A stretch of DNA of 63,056 nucleotides, the filler included, from Sluysia triapertura (lineage: Eukaryota), in assembly GCA_046118255.1 (NCBI GenBank). It is 4 parts of 4 records of this genome, joined end to end, with 100 filler letters (N's around TTAATTAATTAA, not from the genome) between each part and the next. Parts side by side here need not be neighbours in the genome. Positions count along the whole stretch, not along the records: positions 36,734 to 47,901 come from JBJNIA010187967.1; 3 more parts are not named here. One strand, 5' to 3'. The notes beneath the pieces are model-generated. The model was not told the origin of the DNA. It saw only the letters and a list, made by a program, of their open reading frames with translations, and ran no database searches. Below, piece by piece: positions 36,734 to 47,901 of the stretch. The translations under genes and the position numbers were made by a program. How positions within the stretch are numbered: the first letter of the stretch is position 1; each line of letters begins with the position of its first letter.

Positions 36734-37046
36734 TATATATGCATCATTTCTGAAATAATATAATTAGAAATTACAATTATCTGAAATTACTAATTATTTT
36801 TTAAAATTATGTTAATAAATTTTAATAATGGCAAATTATTAATTTATAGAAAATTATTAAGTAAATTATTGTTGGTTATTTTTGATATAATGATATTTAA
36901 ATCATTGAAAAATATCAAGAGATTATAAAAAATCAAATTATTTAATATTACTACAATATTTCGTACTTTGACATTTTATAAGGTTATTATTAAACAAGTA
37001 GTTATGGTTACTGTTATTAATCAATAACAAATTTTATGGCTAATTG

Positions 37047-37503
37047 CTATCGCATATCCATGCTAGCAATAATGGAAGAAAATTCTGACAATTGCTGATA
37101 CTGTTGTTGATAATGCTGGGGATCTGAACTTGTCTGATTGTTGGAACTAGATGATGATGATTCGGTATTTTCCAGAGTCAGTAAAAGAGGACATGGCAAT
37201 AGTTCCGGGATGACGGAAAGATGAGTAATAAGACTATTTAGATTAGGCCAAGCTTTATCTAATCCTACAATACGGTAACCAGGTGAATGACGACAACGTG
37301 CAATAATGTAATGATTTACTGTATTAGGAGCAACTTTTACACTTAAAGCCAAGCAGTGCGGTTGACTAGCACTGTCACGAAGTACAAAATCACCAATTTC
37401 TCGAGTTAATAGAAACTCACGAGCATTTTCTTTCGATAAACGTGGAAAATAGTAATGATTAAAGTCGATACTAAGAGGAATCCCATTAGCAGTGACAGGG
37501 CAT
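37047..37503 (-). CDS. EGFRAP: Last coding exon of an SH2-domain adaptor (EGFR adapter protein / tensin-like SH2)
   Basis: It encodes YYFPRLSKENAREFLLTREIGDFVLRDSASQPHCLALSVKV..VNHYII..GYRIVG..LITHLSVIPELLPCPL..YQQLSEFSSIIASMDMR*. The FVLRDS SH2 motif is present and the LITHxSVxPELLPxPL tail is typical of EGFRAP-like proteins. Confidence 0.8.
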
Positions 37504-37537
37504 CTATTAATAATTATAATAAATACATATAACTTAC

Positions 37538-37813
37538 GTTATATTAGTATTGCTATTAATATTGTAGTTTGTGTTGGTATTATAATTAGGTGGCCCTTGT
37601 GTATTTTTTTGAAGATTTCTAGCACCATACTGACGATGATTGTCATCAATATCATCATCTACGTCAGATGAAGATGATGGAGTTGTGATTGGTGACAAAT
37701 CTAACTCACTGTTGTTAGTGATATTATTGTTTAAGTTATTACTGATTGTAACAGTAGAACCAGATGAAGTTGATAATACCGAATTAGCACCAATTTGTCG
37801 TAAGGAATGAATT
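37538..37813 (-). CDS. Penultimate exon (S/N/D-rich, low complexity) of the SH2 adaptor gene
   Basis: The acceptor is aacag| and the donor |GTAAGT. The 276-nt phase 2-2 exon is open and joins the SH2 exon in frame across a 34-nt intron. Confidence 0.75.
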
Positions 37814-39416
37814 CTGTTATAATTTGAATAATAATAATAATGATGATAATAATATTAGTAATAGTAATAATAATGATATACAGTAATATAATATTAAAAA
37901 ACTTTTAAAATGATCTGAAATCAAAAGAAAATTAAACAGAATGTAAGACATATAAGGTGAAACTTGATATACTTAACCACCAATTAGAGAAGGTTACATA
38001 TAGAACGAAAAAACCTATAATTTTATTAAAATAGAAATGAAAAAACGAATACCAACAAACACAAGTCAAAACAAAACTACCAAATAATTATATGCAAATG
38101 CATAAAGGAATGAGAATGGTCAAACCAATATTGTAAAAAATTAAATAATTAACTGAAACTCGCTACATTATTATTATTAGTTCATTCTTTTATAAAAACG
38201 AATTTAATCAAGTCATATTTTTTATATTAAAGTATTCAATCAGAATAGTTCAGTGGCAGATAAAATACTTTCAAGAAATATGACACATTGCTTAACACCT
38301 CAAAACCACATTTCTTGTTTTTAACAAATCTATTTGAAACCTAACAATAAATCCACTTAAATTTAACTATTCTACTCATTTTTTTTGATTTGTGAGACTA
38401 ATTTAAAATCTAAAGGTAAAATTAAAATAAATAAGGATATAGCTTGAAGAATCTGATATAAGGGATAAAATATCTCCAAAGGTACATTTAACTTAAGAAG
38501 TGTAGAAACTCAGAATTAATTACCAAATAGAGAAAGCTACAAATTAAACAGAACAGCATGAACAAATACAAACTAGCATATAACTCTGTGATCAGGAAAC
38601 TTTTACCTTCACACTAGTCCAATACGATTTTAGTAATTTTATCATTACCCTCCAAAATTTTACTTTTACCCCATCATTTAGAATAATAATATGACAAATC
38701 AGAACAAAATCAGAAAAACGACATAGAACAAGATAATAATCAGAAATCGGCGAAAAATAATGTTGAAGTTTGTGATGGATTATGTAAAATAAGTGTGAAT
38801 TCTGAGCAGAGTGAAATAAATACCAATGGGGGTGCTAATATGGACTGTTCGAGCATTATACAAAACAACGAGTCTGATAATTCAAAAAGCCATTCAGAAG
38901 AAAATAATTGAATACCTAAAAATTATAAAATATATAAAAATTTATTAATAATATAAGATTCAATAATTGCTACGCGACATAAAAATTATAATACGTTTTT
39001 TAAGAGTAATTTTTAATAAGTTAAAAAATAAAATAAATAAAAAACTTTTTAAAGTAAAAATAATAGTGCCCTCCACACTTCAACTATTATAATGGATATT
39101 CCAAAGAGTAAAGACTAAACACAATGCACATTAATTTCTACATAAAAGTATTCTCATTAGACTTATATTATAATATACCTCGACATTACAATTAAAATAA
39201 ATTAATATTGAAATTATTAATAGATTAATATATAACAAATTAAATGTTTACAGAAATATTACTAGTATTATAATATTAAATTAAATTTCTCCAAATAATG
39301 TCCAAGTTGAATCATCTTTGACATGTCAAATTTCAGTAGTATTTCAGTATTAATAATTATTTAGTATGTATTTTTACATAAAGTTTGATATGTGCTCTTT
39401 TAACAACATCAAAAAT

Positions 39417-40131
39417 TGTACGTCGTTCTAATTGGTTGTTCAATCAGAGTGATAAAAATAATGAAAATAGCTACTCTGGTTGGACAACCAAAATAATACC
39501 AGAAATCTTTTACATTGGAAGGCCAACCGCTATCAATGATGACAATAATTTATACATGGAAACCAACAATGTCAGCGTTGGTAGTGGTAAAATAATGAAA
39601 AACAAAAATGATGATAGTAATAATAATATTCAAAAATACATAAATCTTTTAAATGTTCTGATGATAAAAACACAATCTTCCTAATATTTAGATTTCTTTT
39701 TCTCGACATATTTGAATTGTCTTTATTACTGAAATGATAGTTCTTAACATCTTTGAAGTGCTTTTTTTATTACTATATTTTAAATTTTATAATGTAATTT
39801 TAATATTTTTCGATGATCTAAAAGATTGAATATTGAAAAATTATGAACTTGAAATTTTTTGGATTAGTTTTGAATATATATTTGATAGTTTAAGATGTAA
39901 ATTGTGGTTCTCATGTTGTGAGATTATGAGTTAAAATGTCCTAATGAAATTTAAATGTGCATTAATGATTTTGGATCTAAGTATGGTTTTGATGTGAGAT
40001 TGTGAATTTAAAATGTTTTGAAATGTAAAAAGGTTTTAATATGTCTGAGAAACTGAAATGTAAGGTGTAAGAAAATGTGATATTTTGTATGAATTAAAGT
40101 TTGAATTCCAAGAGAAAGGTTGGCCACCACA
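39417..40131 (-). mobile_element. Cassette copy C with two hairpins
   Basis: The minus strand starts TGTGGTGGCCAACC and ends CGTACA. It is colinear with copies B and D, with hairpins at 39432-39491 and 39526-39588. Confidence 0.7.
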
Positions 40132-40759
40132 TTCCGTTTCGGGTAATTTGTAGTAGTTACATTTTAGAATTTACTAAACGTTTCGATGTATAAACTTTAC
40201 TTAACCACTTATACAATATTTTGATAAAATATGATTTTTTCATAGTAACCTAAAATACAAAGATCTACTACTTTACGTATTTGAAACCAGTGATTAACAT
40301 TTGGTAAGAGATAAGGACTCCTGATAGTAAATTAAAAAATTAATTAATTGAAGATATAATAATTGAAAATAATTAAAGATCCTCGCTTACGTTATCAGAT
40401 TTACTTGAATTCTTTTGGCATTGGAAGTTTTATTTTATAATTAAGTTAAAGGATAAAATCATATGCAAAAATATTTTACTTTTTATGCTAGATTAAGTAA
40501 AATCATTTTTGAAATAATAAATTCTAATAGTATAATTTACTACAATAAAAGTAACAATTGATGATACTGTAGATTACTTTTAACTACAGTATATATAATA
40601 AATTGTTACTTTTATTAATAGATTTTGGTCTTTAGAAGCTCTTGTTAATAGAATCATTTTTTAAATATATTTTACTATATTCCTTTTGCATTAGTAAGGA
40701 ATCAAATATAAGGAATAGTTAGTAAACATATGATTCAAACAAGTTATAACTTAAATGTA

Positions 40760-41584
40760 TGTTAGGTTGCAATCACAACCCCCTAAAATTATGAGAAATA
40801 TTATTAAAATTTCTTTTAAATCACTCAAAAAATATTTTAGAGTTTCCGAATATCCAAAAAACATTTATTTTCCAAAAAGAAAATAGAATCTAAAAAGGAA
40901 TATTTGCTTCTATAAATAGAATAGAAGCTTCTAGAATGTTCTAGAACATTCCATCGATTTTCATTGGCTGATGACTAGTATATAAACTAACATCAGTTTA
41001 ATGAAAATCACCTTTTTTGTAAAACACTATATTGCAATTTCAATTTGGAAAAGTAGTCATTGTTATATTGTATTTCTGAGGACAGTTGTTTCAAAATTAG
41101 TACAAGGAGATTATCAATCGTGCATTCAGGGATCTTTAAAGGAGAATTCTGTTCAATTCCATGTCATTATTAAGTTATTTTTTATAAGGAGATATTAATC
41201 TTGATCAATAAGACTAATATCATAAAAATTTTAAACTTCTAAAGAAAAAATAAGGTTCCCCAGATATATTGAGAGGAAAAATACACGTAAATTCATTTTT
41301 ATCATAAATTACAGACTGAAAAGACAGTTTTAACTTTAGTAATTATAATTTCATTGAATTTTATTTGTTTTTCATAATCTTTGTAATTTTATCTTTTGTT
41401 GTTAGTTGAATTTATTAATTAATAAAGTTTTTAATTGTTAAATTGACGTTGTGTTTACATTATAGACCCTTAAGTATTAAATTGATTGTAAGATCCAAGA
41501 TTGTAAGATTAGATTTAAGATAGTCGCTAATTTATCAAGTTACAGAAACGCCGTTACGCCTTGTAAGACGTTTACTGTAACTCA
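40760..41584 (+). mobile_element. LTR of an LTR retrotransposon (second family)
   Basis: It starts TGTTAGGTTG, has ATTGG/TATATAA promoter motifs at ~40962-40986 and AATAAA at ~41421, and ends GTAACTCA followed by aaaTGG. Related copies lie at 51523+, 49620-49827 (-) and 47735-47789 (3' end). Confidence 0.65.
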
Positions 41585-42728
41585 AAATGGATGGGAAACC
41601 ATCATAGAGAGTCATTTACACAATACTTAATATTTTAATATCACATATGACCAAACCATCGCATATAGTCAGATATGTAATATGTATCTTATATTTTAAT
41701 GAAAAAATGAGCCTTAGGTCTAATAAACAGATAAAAAGTTGGGATAATTAAGTTTAACTAACAAAACTACCATTAAAATATAGTTCCCAATTACGATGAA
41801 ATTACTCTTGGATTCGATTAACGACGGACACTTACTATATGATTTACCTAAACTTATATTTGAATTTGTAGCGTGAGATATATTCATAGAATTTTTATAG
41901 TGCTTAAGTTTCCTTGTAGGTCTATTATCTGAATCGTTTTCGTATCTATTATAACAAGTATTCTGGCAATCGGCCAAAATTCGTATATCATGTAATTCAA
42001 TTTTACGTATTATCCAAATTGCAAGATATAAACCAGTAAAAGACATGTTTGTTCGCCTCTGTTTCAACTCGACACCAGTTCATTATGCATCATATTATTT
42101 GAATGTAAATCAGATTAATTTTATTTATTAGTATAATGGCATAAATGTTGTTTTGATTTGATGCTAAAGATATTTGAGGCCTGATATTTCTTAGTACGTA
42201 ATCTATTGCAGTACTTTTCGCATTCGACACACAAGATAAGTAAATGAATATCAAAATTGTTGACTTTAATTGTTCCATTTACCACTTTCCATAAATAAAC
42301 GGTGTTTGATTATTTCTAGCGTATTCATAAATCGGAGGTGGAAATATTGGCAGACTCAGTGGAGAAGCATAATCATTTCGGTATAGAATTGTATATGGAT
42401 CATGGTCATCGTTATTATTATGAGGTAGACATAGATATTTGAGACAAACATAATAATAGTTAGTACTATTATAGCAACAGCAATTACAAACAATTTATTT
42501 CATATAGTTGTTCTTTTTGCCTTTTAGATAAATTTTTATTAGTGATTTGAATTTCTCCACAATCTTCTTCTTGTAAATCACGTTGTAATTTTATTAAATT
42601 ATTACTTGCTTTGTCCATTATTGTGTTAATATATGTTGATGTTTCACAATAATCTGTAAATAACCATTTATTGTCATTCGCATAGTTTATAATTCAAACA
42701 GATATTTTCCTTCGCAATTATTACAAAT

Positions 42729-45700
42729 TCAACTTTCTATACCTATATCTAGTTTTTCTTGGTTGATTTCCGAAACTATGAACATAATTCGGCCAATTAA
42801 TGAACTATTTGTTCTTGCTAGCATTATATACTCCGTCCTACTTAATAACCATAATGGTTCATCTACATAAACGTCTTCATCATCAATAGCTCTTTTCGAA
42901 TTACTATCCATCAATTTAACTCTATCAAAATCCAGTTTAAGTCCTTTTATCTGAGATAATATATCCATTCCTAGTATCATGTTTTTAGGGCATTTTTTCA
43001 TTACTCTTAATTTTAATTCAATTTTATTTTGTCCTATTTCACACATAGCTTTCATCACACTAACTATATGTATAGCATCTCCAGTGACACCTGAAATGAA
43101 AGTAATGATCCGCGAGATTTTTCAGTTCTCCTTCTGTTAATTTAGTTTCGTTAATTAATGAAGCCACTTGTTCTGTATTTATTTTGATGTTTACCATCGG
43201 TCTCTTGGAATTATTGTAATTGTTATTTGCACATATTATCATATATATTACATTCGGTATCGGTGATGTCGGTGCAATATGATAAATTTGTTCCCTTTGC
43301 GTTCTTTTTAGACTTTCTTTTAATTTTTCAATTTCTTCATTTTCATTGTTATGTATTGTTTGTAACAATACTTTTTCGGTTTCACTTCGTCTTATTTCTT
43401 TCCTTAATTCGTTCATTTGTGAATTCGCATGGTGGTGCAAAAGATATTTTGCCGAAATTTCCATGTAAATCCTGAAATTTTGTAAATTACTACAACAGAG
43501 AAGATTTGAGATATAATTAGTGCGATTACCTTAATTATTATATAAATACCAATTAATCCAGAAAAAGCTTGACTTAATATTAAAAAACTACCCCAAATTT
43601 GTTTTAATGTGTTTTGGGCAGCTTTTTTAAAGTGATTTGGCCCTAATAACAATTCGAAATTTATTCTTCCATCTTTTTCAACTGTTGCTTTATCCACTAT
43701 ATCTGTTAACACTTTATTGGAAATAGTATTTCTTGACAGGTTGCTTATATAAATTCCTTTTTATAAATACCAGAATGCGGTATTTTCTTTGTAGGTAAAA
43801 TTTTTAGTTTCCATTTCTGCTCGGTTAATCCTATAAATTCAGGTACTTTGACTTGAGTCCTATGTAAAACGAAATAAATAAGTTTTTGTTATTTCTATAT
43901 TATCACAAAAAGCATATTATTTGTTGAATTGCCTTTTCTTGGTATCGCCGTATTTAATATATTAAAATTACCAAATAAGTTTAAGAATAAATTGAGTGGC
44001 TATTCAAAATTCTGACTTTATTTTCCTTTCATTATGTTTCTCCATCCTCCTTTTTCTTCGATCCACAATTTGGTTTTCTTATTTACGAAATCCACAATTT
44101 TATCTATCTTAGTGGTTGTTATTGACTTTGATTTGTTACATTGAAATATAGTATGCGCTATAATTATTTTGAATCTTTTTTTATTTATACCTTTATTAAG
44201 TTGTTCGTTAATTATTAATTTGTAATGTCAATTTCCTATAAAAATACTAACGCCATTATCTTTATGCTTTTGCTCTAGTTATTTTATTAATCTTTTAATT
44301 TAGGTAACAATTTTTTACACTTCTTAAAATTAGTAAACGTATTAGGTAGTAACGCATAAATTACATTTTTTGTATCTAACTCTATCTTTTCTTCTTCATT
44401 CTCATCTATTATAATAGTTAAATCTATAATGTTTTTACGAACGGGATTACGTGTTATTAATATATCTTCGTTTTTTCTTAGGCTAACAGGCCGTCTTTTA
44501 ATAGAATTATTTTTCCTGTCACTAGTTTCAATGTGTGGATTTCTATTTAGATCCACTATATAATCAGGATCCTCTATTGTATCATTATTTTTCATAACTT
44601 CATTATCATTTTTATCCATTAATTGTCTCAAAAATGATTGTGGGTTAACATTAACTTCATCATCAGATAGATTTTCTAACAAATTATTATCAAAGTCAGC
44701 AGTTTTGTAAGTAGTAATGTCCTTTACCATTTTTTTCATGGCTTCCCAATGGATAACCGTAATCATTAAAAAATCCGTAGGTATTAAATATCTATTATTA
44801 CAATATAGTTCCACATTCAATATTGATGGGTCATTAATTTTTATTATTTCAATAATATCTTGAAATTAATCTTTTAATCTTTTCTATTTCAGATCAGCCA
44901 TTTGCTTCTGCAGTGCTGTCGAATTCGAATAGAAAATCACATAATTCTTCATTTCCATTGAATTTGCGAGTCTCCGGGAGAATAACTGCGGGTTTTATAC
45001 TAAAAGAAAGTTGCCTTAAGCAATCTCTTAAATCATCAACTGTTTCTGCCTTATTTTTCTTACTTTTCTTAGTCTTAATCTTAATATTTTCTAATGAATT
45101 AATTCTAAGTAATCTGCTTCTATTTTTTATCAATTCTTAAAAGAATGTGTCAAATCTAGCAACGAAATGCAAAGATTATGTCAAATCTAAAAAAACCAGC
45201 AGAAAAATTCACTTAAACACTTTAAAACTTGGATAGTTTCAGCAATACTTAAATTCTGTTACTTATTCCTAACTTAGCTTAAACTTTTATTTATTTAATG
45301 TCAGTGCACATGCCAATTCGGGCACCAAATTATTGTTAGAAAAATCCTACTTAACAATTATGAAATTTATTATTATCAACAGGGTTCGTCTGTATATTGC
45401 AGTTTATGTCTTAGAGAGGACAAAATTACAGATACTGACTTTTAAAATATTTTCTCTGTAGTAATTGAAGCTTCCCTACACCAATAAGGCTAAGAATTTT
45501 ATCAAAGAATCGCAAATACTTTTTGTAATACAATCAATTATTCATTTAACTCGATATCGTAACTGATGATGTTTTGATTATGATTATTTTATATTATCCT
45601 AAAAATCTCGATTTATCTTTATTTTTAGAAATATCTTTAAAACGTTTGAACCTTTTAAACTTATGCTTTTCTATTAACGTTAATATTAGTTTAAACTCGT

Positions 45701-45801
45701 TGATTTCTCTTTATTCTTTAATGTTTTATTAAAAATACTTATTAGATCTGATAGTTTAAATTTATCTTTTGAATTCTTAAAACTATAAACAATTTACAAC
45801 A
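42729..45801 (-). mobile_element. Rearranged, degenerate Gypsy-like LTR retroelement with gag, protease and env-like remnants
   Basis: A putative 5' LTR spans 45801-45334 (TGTTG...TAACA), followed by the PBS-like TGGTGCCCGAA at 45327 (compare tRNA-Lys PBS TGGCGCCCGAA). Gag-like KFNGNEELCDFLFEFDSTAEANG, protease-like RPMVNIKINTEQVASLI and NMILGMDIL, and an env-like TM segment at 43413-43712 follow. Confidence 0.75.
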
Positions 45802-47901
45802 ATTAATTCTATTGTTATGTAATTTTTGTCGTACCAGTTTTTATTATTCATTATGTAATGTATATTTTAGCTAAAATTTACGATAAGAAAATGATATTTA
45901 TTGGTTTTATATGGATTTTTAATTTTGTCTATTATTTAGACGAAGACTTTTAAATTATTGCACCTCATCCACCATATACTGTACAATGGAGTTATTTAGG
46001 TATGATACATTTAGGAGTAAAATCACAATATGGATTTTTTGAATAATGCACAAGTAACTTTTTTCCTACCGGATTTATGTTGCGGATTTGTAAAACTATA
46101 ATTTATTTTAATCATTCAATACTCAAGAAAAACGGAATCTGTAGAATCTTTGCTAAAACAACATAATGTTAATATTGTTAATATTCTTATGTAAATATTA
46201 GAAGATAGTATTCTTAGGTATAATTGGTTTACTTATAATCCAGTATTAGCCGAAGAGATGATAAAGAATTTATCTAGTAGTGGTGTTATGAAATCATTGC
46301 AATTGTTTTTTTCTTTGGTTTATTACAACTGTCCACTATTATCCACGTGATCAAATACCTTTACCAGATTTAGAAACTGTACTTGATATTATGCGTGCTA
46401 CTTACATTATTTTAATTTATGACAATTTACGAGAAATGGGTCAAAATATCCTATATGTCCTGATGCATGTGAAAAAGGGCTTGGCTTATGTTCCATATGT
46501 GTCTGCTGAACTGTGTTTTCGAGATAAATTGAGATTATGTGATAGAAATTATTATTGTCGTAAAGAAAGTCTTAAGTAGAATATTTATNNNNNNNNNNNN
46601 NNNNNNNNNNNNNNNNNNNNNNNNNNNNNNNNNNNNNNNNNNNNNNNNNNNNNNNNNNNNNNNNNNNNNNNNNNNNNNNNNNNNNNNNNNNNNNNNNNNN
46701 NNNNNNNNNNNNNNNNAATTTGTAATACTTAAAAGTGTAATGAGTTCACCTACGATCCTAGGCTTATGCACTTAGTCCATAGGATTACAATAAAAGTGAG
46801 TAAATCGGAGGTCAAATAGTAAATTAGATTAAGTATTTATTATTAAAAAAGGATAGGTTGTAGAATGCTAGCTACTTAATATTCTTGAAAATCAATGATA
46901 CTGCGGACTGACCAAAATAACACCTTACAAGTATTAATTATGTGCTAATGGATATGTGGAAAATAAATGTTGCAGAGATATTTAATTTCCGCTTCCTTTC
47001 AAGCGATATTATTAAAAAATGATTTTATGTAAGATTGCAATTTAAAGGAGATCTTGATAAATTGAAATTTATGCTGAATATTATACTCGATCTTTTAATA
47101 AATCAAACGACATAGAAGAAACGAAAGGTTTCTTCTCTTATTCACTTTCAAAGATTTTGTCTGTCTAACTAATGACGAATTATCAACAAACTATTTAGAT
47201 ATATTAGGCAGATAATATTACTAATATGAATACAAAGGTTTATTAATATATTAACTTATTAATAATAATTAACGTTGAAAAAATAATTTAATTATTATTT
47301 ACTAAATTATCGACTCTAATTGTGAAAATTTACCTTTCCAAAAATTAAATAATTTATTTTGATCTCAACCAATTTAAACAGTTGAAGAATTATAAATAAA
47401 ATTTAAGTGGAATTTATTGTATTTTTAAAGTGTGAAGAAAACTTATAAATTTTTTAAACTAACGATCACTTCACTTAAAGAAAATTCTTTGTTATGTCCA
47501 AGATTATTTTTGAATGATCAGCAGATTATCCATTTTATTGTAATTTTGTTTTAGAACTTTTTAAATAATAGTAATTTTAAGAATTTTTTATAGTATTTAT
47601 AATATTTATAATTTTTTAATAAATACACAAATTATAAAAATACATAAAATGTAAAATAATAAAATAGAAATAATTTTATATAAAAATATCAATATAAATT
47701 CTTATATACAACCTTTACAGAATTAAGGTAGTTTTTAACTTATCAAGTTGCAGAAACGCCAACTATACGTTGTAAGACGTTTAGTGTCAAAAAATATTTT
47801 GTCATAGGTTAGGTATTAGAAAAACTACAGCACATTAAAATATGCTTAATATTACTATTATTTTTATATTAAATTTTAAAGGCAAATAAAACTTAATTAA
47901 T

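Follow-up and report, generated by a model that had tools for sequence, protein, structure and literature searches.

Two neighbouring stem-loops with a common wobble-pair core opposite a Shc-like adaptor gene in Sluysia triapertura as candidate RNA structures

The window, by which we mean the whole stretch of 63,056 nucleotides of DNA from Sluysia triapertura that was analysed (assembly GCA_046118255.1), consists of four parts joined end to end. The analysis covers the one part that was usable, a piece of 11 kb at positions 36734-47901 (record JBJNIA010187967.1), which is animal DNA with a GC content of approximately 26%. It contains the last exons of an adaptor gene, two neighbouring hairpins that we call A and B, and a degenerate retroelement, arranged as follows:

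37050-37499, minus strand: last coding exon of the adaptor gene, with an SH2 domain and the conserved C-terminal tail ...YQ.LS.FSS...
about 37540-37812, minus strand: preceding exon of the same gene, of low complexity and separated from the last exon by a short intron
39382-39681, plus strand: stop-free frame of 100 codons that spans both hairpins
39432-39491, plus strand: hairpin A, with 20 uninterrupted base pairs and a 20-nt A/U loop
39440-39444, plus strand: core TCAAT in the 5' arm of hairpin A, paired with 39479-39483
39479-39483, plus strand: core GTTGG in the 3' arm of hairpin A, paired with 39440-39444
39492-39525, plus strand: linker of 34 nt between hairpins A and B
39526-39588, plus strand: hairpin B, with the 5' arm at 39526-39544, the loop at 39545-39569 and the 3' arm at 39570-39588
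39533-39537, plus strand: core TCAAT in the 5' arm of hairpin B, paired with 39577-39581
39577-39581, plus strand: core GTTGG in the 3' arm of hairpin B, paired with 39533-39537
about 41400-47900, minus strand: degenerate LTR retroelement, its internal open reading frames broken into pieces
41479-41552 and 47482-47760: repeats that by their look resemble LTR remnants
42729-43058: protease-like open reading frame of the retroelement
43413-43712: transmembrane envelope-like open reading frame of the retroelement (PF24664, viral fusion glycoprotein family, E 1.7e-10)

A phmmer search with the SH2 exon against 1.84 billion representative proteins gave 271 relatives, all of them distant. The best identity was only 54%, and this genome and its close kin therefore seem to be absent from the protein collections. 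The homologues that were fetched, which from their accession numbers we take to be placed in helminth- or flatworm-type assemblies, carry either a PID domain (PF00640) together with an SH2 domain (PF00017) or an SH2 domain alone, and the layout with both domains is that of a Shc-type adaptor. Since no PID exon was found by local blast in the 11-kb piece, the sequence to the right of position 37812 probably belongs to a large intron of the Shc-like gene. The two hairpins lie on the opposite strand, at a distance of approximately 1.6 kb from this gene's last exons.

The surroundings of the hairpins contain some further features. On the plus strand, approximately 520 nt upstream of hairpin A, there is a 70-codon, stop-free and GC-richer stretch that ends in TGA (38699-38908) and for which no Pfam match was obtained. 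If this stretch were the last exon of a nested plus-strand gene, the hairpins would be located in or just past its 3' UTR. The sequence at 39009-39051 is A/T-rich and of low complexity. Inside the retroelement, a run of 128 N at positions 46589-46716 marks an assembly gap or a mask.

Hairpin B had been described in an earlier, sequence-only reading of the window, and we recovered it as it was written there, with both arms in place (ACCGCTATCAATGATGACA at 39526-39544 and TGTCAGCGTTGGTAGTGGT at 39570-39588, plus strand). Its stem consists of 13 base pairs, an A.G mismatch (39539/39575) and another five base pairs, and is closed by a loop of 25 nt. That reading had also proposed that both strands be folded, and a good fold was obtained on the plus strand only: the plus strand folds at -23.8 kcal/mol with a z-score of -3.56, and none of 200 shuffled sequences was as good, whereas the minus strand has a z-score of +0.20, with 110 of 200 shuffled sequences as good. 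The strand asymmetry of hairpin B persisted when DNA parameters were used. Folding with the flanks included gave no lower stem beneath its 19 positions, and no further copy of either arm was identified in the piece with up to three mismatches allowed.

Hairpin A, which is new here and absent from the earlier reading, lies 35 nt upstream of hairpin B on the same strand and is the stronger of the two. Its stem is composed of 19 Watson-Crick or inner wobble pairs and a closing G.U pair. The plus strand folds at -27.9 kcal/mol with a z-score of -6.40, and the z-score on the minus strand is -2.74. No other stem in the piece is as long, and 100 composition-preserving shuffles of the piece gave a maximum of 18 base pairs. 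Two short motifs follow both hairpins: AAAATAAT is located directly after hairpin A and, at 39589-39596, after hairpin B, and AAATCTTTTA appears 13 nt later after hairpin A (39503-39512) and 53 nt later after hairpin B (39642-39651). Runs of TTTT are present at 39507-39510 and 39646-39649. Their repetition behind both hairpins may hint at a duplicated unit, but only weakly so, because the sequence here is A/T-rich and of low complexity.

Taken over both hairpins, the strand asymmetry is observed again in the fold of a 241-nt region that includes the pair, with z-scores of -6.36 on the plus strand and -1.07 on the minus strand. It goes along with the distribution of the wobble pairs. The stems contain three G.U pairs each when read on the plus strand, so that all six wobble pairs are G.U on this strand and none is A.C. 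Under a model in which transitions fall randomly on the one or the other base of a pair, the two-sided binomial probability of such a one-sided outcome is 0.03 by our own arithmetic, for a sample of six pairs. The claim in the earlier reading of a consistent G-U strand thus holds for hairpin B and extends to hairpin A, which that reading did not list. Mutation asymmetry can be coupled to transcription, and if mutation were biased by the host gene being transcribed, wobbles would be expected on the minus strand, not on the plus strand.

The observed common core is a block of five pairs, UCAAU/GUUGG (U.G, C-G, A-U, A-U, U.G), which is identical in hairpins A and B, with both wobbles included. 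It is located at equal depth in the two stems, and the remaining pairs on both sides differ between the hairpins and are still paired. When the order of the pairs was shuffled 100,000 times, a shared block of at least five pairs was obtained with a frequency of 0.019 at any offset and of 0.003 in the observed register (within 1 bp). The alignment made by MAFFT did not follow the structure of the two hairpins. The GC content is 40-53% in the arms and 15-24% in the loops, against a background of 26%, and GC-rich arms in an A+T-rich genome are the usual look of structured RNA.

Other strong palindromes are also present in the piece, at 40544-40616, 40934-41013 and 41524-41603, with folding energies of -24 to -28 kcal/mol per 80 nt; the last of these is located inside one of the putative LTRs. 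Because they fold about equally well on both strands, the pair of hairpins at 39.4-39.6 kb is set apart from them by its strand bias.

We searched for copies and orthologous hairpins with several approaches. A degenerate pattern of the two arms gave two matches in metagenome contigs, both of them in unrelated sequence of 45-50% GC and forced by the palindromic nature of the pattern, two chance matches in GC-rich MAGs among the bacterial and archaeal genomes, and no match in viral contigs. Neither the SH2 exon nor a transposon open reading frame, used as queries in word searches, led to contigs from this genome or a sister genome. A hairpin with the common core was absent from four orthologous loci (L003, L004, L007 and L008), which have a GC content of 37-46% and are too distant. 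The arm sequences were not found in the literature.

We hypothesize that hairpins A and B are neighbouring stem-loops that have been selected as RNA structure on a plus-strand transcript, and put the probability of this reading at roughly 0.4. To the broader proposal that the two hairpins function in some way as structures at the level of RNA we give the same tentative standing. The idea that the structure is read on the plus strand, antisense to the SH2 gene, is supported because the G.U pattern is consistent in strand across both hairpins. Several explanations compete with this reading, and we consider them in turn.

One alternative, which we regard as somewhat unlikely, is that the hairpins are fragments of a dispersed repeat or a transposable element, in which case the palindromes would exist at the level of DNA only and the bias toward G.U pairs would be due to chance. 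The claim in the sequence-only reading of copies in different, unrelated parts of the genome would suit a repeat family, and the piece does contain a degenerate LTR element as well as further strong palindromes whose folds are equally good on either strand. However, no second copy is found within the 11 kb, neither hairpin has, by eye, a target-site duplication or a recognisable terminal motif, and six wobbles with no A.C pair would not be expected under neutral decay (p 0.03). The hairpins do resemble the remnants of foldback elements or MITEs in being short inverted repeats around an A/T-rich spacer that are reportedly present in several copies, but they differ from these in being below the known size of MITEs, in having no visible target-site duplication and in carrying wobbles on one strand only. 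An identity as a MITE or another element with terminal inverted repeats was rejected on the flanks, which read TCTAA/AATAAT for hairpin A and GGCCA/AAAATA for hairpin B and, by eye, do not form a target-site duplication. The end of a Helitron, where a GC-rich hairpin with a short loop precedes a CTRR terminus by 10-12 nt, was likewise rejected: the loops of 20-25 nt are far longer than those of Helitron hairpins, and inspection by eye of the 20 nt downstream showed no CTRR on either strand.

We also considered the possibility that the locus is a canonical cluster of microRNAs, with two precursors that would be cut by Drosha and Dicer to products of approximately 22 nt. The size of about 60 nt, the spacing of 35 nt on one strand and the stable, strand-specific folds would all fit such a cluster. 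A miRNA duplex is expected to have 16 or more paired bases in a hairpin of approximately 55-70 nt; hairpin A has 20 base pairs and hairpin B has 18 base pairs and one mismatch. Clustered precursors in animals, such as mir-71/mir-2 in the flatworms, likewise stand in tandem on one strand, each about 60 nt long and separated from the next by a few tens of bases, and the likeness extends to strand-specific pairing with G.U, an intronic or antisense position and stems that look specific to the lineage. What sets the hairpins apart from such precursors is that their helices end after 19-20 base pairs with unpaired flanks, that they match no Rfam 15 family, and that the part they have in common is located in the middle of the stem and not in a seed. 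A substrate for Drosha has a stem of approximately 33-35 base pairs, with about 11 base pairs below the cut in addition to the 22-bp duplex. No basal helix was observed here: flanks of 25-30 nt add no pair to either stem, and the fold of the 241-nt region adds weak, distant pairs only. Because of this lack of a basal extension, neither hairpin is a canonical miRNA precursor. The description of hairpin B as pre-miRNA-like in the earlier reading is thus correct with regard to size, but not with regard to the lower part of the stem, nor is it backed by any miRNA family above chance.

The comparison with known RNA families points in the same direction. No match at E<=1 was obtained for the whole piece in Rfam 15. 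A lax scan of 39380-39700 gave sub-threshold matches only, among them GlsR7 (19 bits, gathering score 75), mir-582 (18.9 bits, gathering score 84, E 0.34 in a search of 321 bases) and mir-1264 (18.2 bits, gathering score 79); the miRNA matches had E values of 0.3-0.4. These weak miRNA alignments coincide with hairpin A, the arms of which match about 12 of 13 bases of each consensus arm of mir-582 (GUUGUUCAAyCAG and CUGGUUGrACAAC). However, since the arms of hairpin A are complementary to each other, this is one short match that is counted twice, and with scores far below the gathering scores we consider an identity as mir-582 or GlsR7 to be at the level of chance. A likeness between miR-133 and the 5' arm of hairpin A was considered and rejected, as the seeds differ and the arm is the wrong one. 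Given these scores, the short helices, the position of the common core and arm sequences that the literature does not contain, a canonical microRNA cluster is improbable.

Other classes of small RNAs were considered and set aside. Hairpin B resembles a C/D box snoRNA in having a terminal stem followed directly by a perfect C box (AUGAUGA, 39536-39542), and weak alignments to SNORD79 and SNORD36 (E 2-5) were obtained. This class was rejected as there is no D box CUGA on the 3' side, which reads UGUCAG, and the terminal stem of 13 base pairs is far longer than usual. An H/ACA snoRNA, which would have a pseudouridylation pocket inside each of its two hairpins, an H box and an ACA 3 nt before its end, was rejected on the continuous stems, neither of which has an internal loop, and the best Rfam match to this class had an E value of 7.9. 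The hairpins are not mirtrons, because their ends are not defined by splice sites and lack the GU...AG pattern. An origin from a tRNA or a SINE was rejected after ARAGORN found none.

Another possibility is that the hairpins are located in a coding exon of an unannotated plus-strand gene, where they would either be incidental or add a secondary feature to the mRNA. The 100-codon frame at 39382-39681 crosses both of them, and every frame of more than 100 codons in the piece is coding sequence of the gene or the transposon. A donor-like GGTAAAA is present at the end of hairpin B, and the open stretch at 38699-38908 could represent a second exon on the same strand. A frame of at least 100 codons was obtained in 10 of 2000 shuffles of 39300-39800, which by extrapolation corresponds to approximately 0.1 such frames expected by chance per 11 kb. 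Against a coding role, the peptide encoded by this frame is of low complexity, a word search found no relative and no Pfam family was above its cut-off, the only match being to NOP19 with an E value of 0.029, which does not reach the cut-off for that family. Nor would a coding exon explain the presence of two perfect palindromes with one-sided wobbles. We think that this explanation has a slim chance of being correct.

The weakest alternative, and in our view a very improbable one, is that the palindromes represent paired DNA sites for transcription factors, with TGACA/TGTCA or YCAAY half-sites: hairpin B does contain TGACA and TGTCA, the homeodomain-type pair that was put forward in the earlier reading, 24 nt apart, and TCAAT is present in both hairpins with CCAAC on the opposite strand, but hairpin A has no TGACA and the part that the hairpins have in common is UCAAU/GUUGG, while a dimeric site needs neither half-sites 30-40 bp apart nor a complementarity of 19-20 bp, and would not account for wobbles that are confined to one strand.

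Returning to the hypothesis of selected RNA structure, several points count against it as well. Only six pairs are behind the strand asymmetry, the Rfam scores are at the level of chance, a long frame crosses both hairpins, and the stems are too short for the best-known processing pathway. We nevertheless give this hypothesis the probability stated above and outline here how such a structure might function. The plus-strand transcript would be antisense to the Shc-like gene and would probably run within its large upstream intron. Hairpins A and B have the appearance of a single module that was duplicated in tandem and has since diverged. The module would consist of a helix of 19-20 base pairs with GC-richer arms, an A/U-rich loop of 20-25 nt, and UCAAU/GUUGG with two U.G wobbles in the middle of the stem. 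The feature that is recognised would be the helix and, above all, its double-wobble core, and the reader could be a dsRNA-binding protein or a Dicer-type enzyme that acts on a short, Drosha-independent hairpin. We infer transcription, the plus strand as the functional one and any processing or binding from the features of the sequence itself.

Two options would fit a helix of 20 base pairs, namely binding by a dsRNA-binding protein and direct entry into Dicer independently of Drosha. Drosha-independent short hairpin RNAs, including endogenous shRNAs, TSS miRNAs such as mir-320 and hairpins of the mir-451 type, are similar to hairpins A and B in having a short helix without a basal stem, although the loops of the hairpins described here are much larger than that of mir-451. 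By analogy with these RNAs, a short helix without a basal stem could enter the Dicer or Argonaute pathway only directly.

A more far-reaching hypothesis, which we consider unlikely as it stands, is that hairpins A and B are members of a multi-copy family of structured RNAs, not described before, in an A+T-rich, flatworm-like animal. Such a family would be characterized by a helix of 19-20 base pairs, an invariant UCAAU/GUUGG, compensatory change and a position antisense to host genes. Its members could form a new class of precursors from which small RNAs are made without Drosha, or an element for recognition by proteins.

If the copies are palindromes in decay that belong to a repeat, the finding is an ordinary one. 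The biogenesis of small RNAs outside the model animals is thinly mapped, and hairpins as short as these, lacking a basal stem, would suggest that small RNAs can arise by a non-canonical route. Should the pairing be kept across diverged copies, as the earlier reading claims, the hairpins would represent a lineage-specific family of structured RNAs in a poorly studied, A+T-rich animal genome, with two wobble pairs at a distance of three base pairs as a clear recognition feature.
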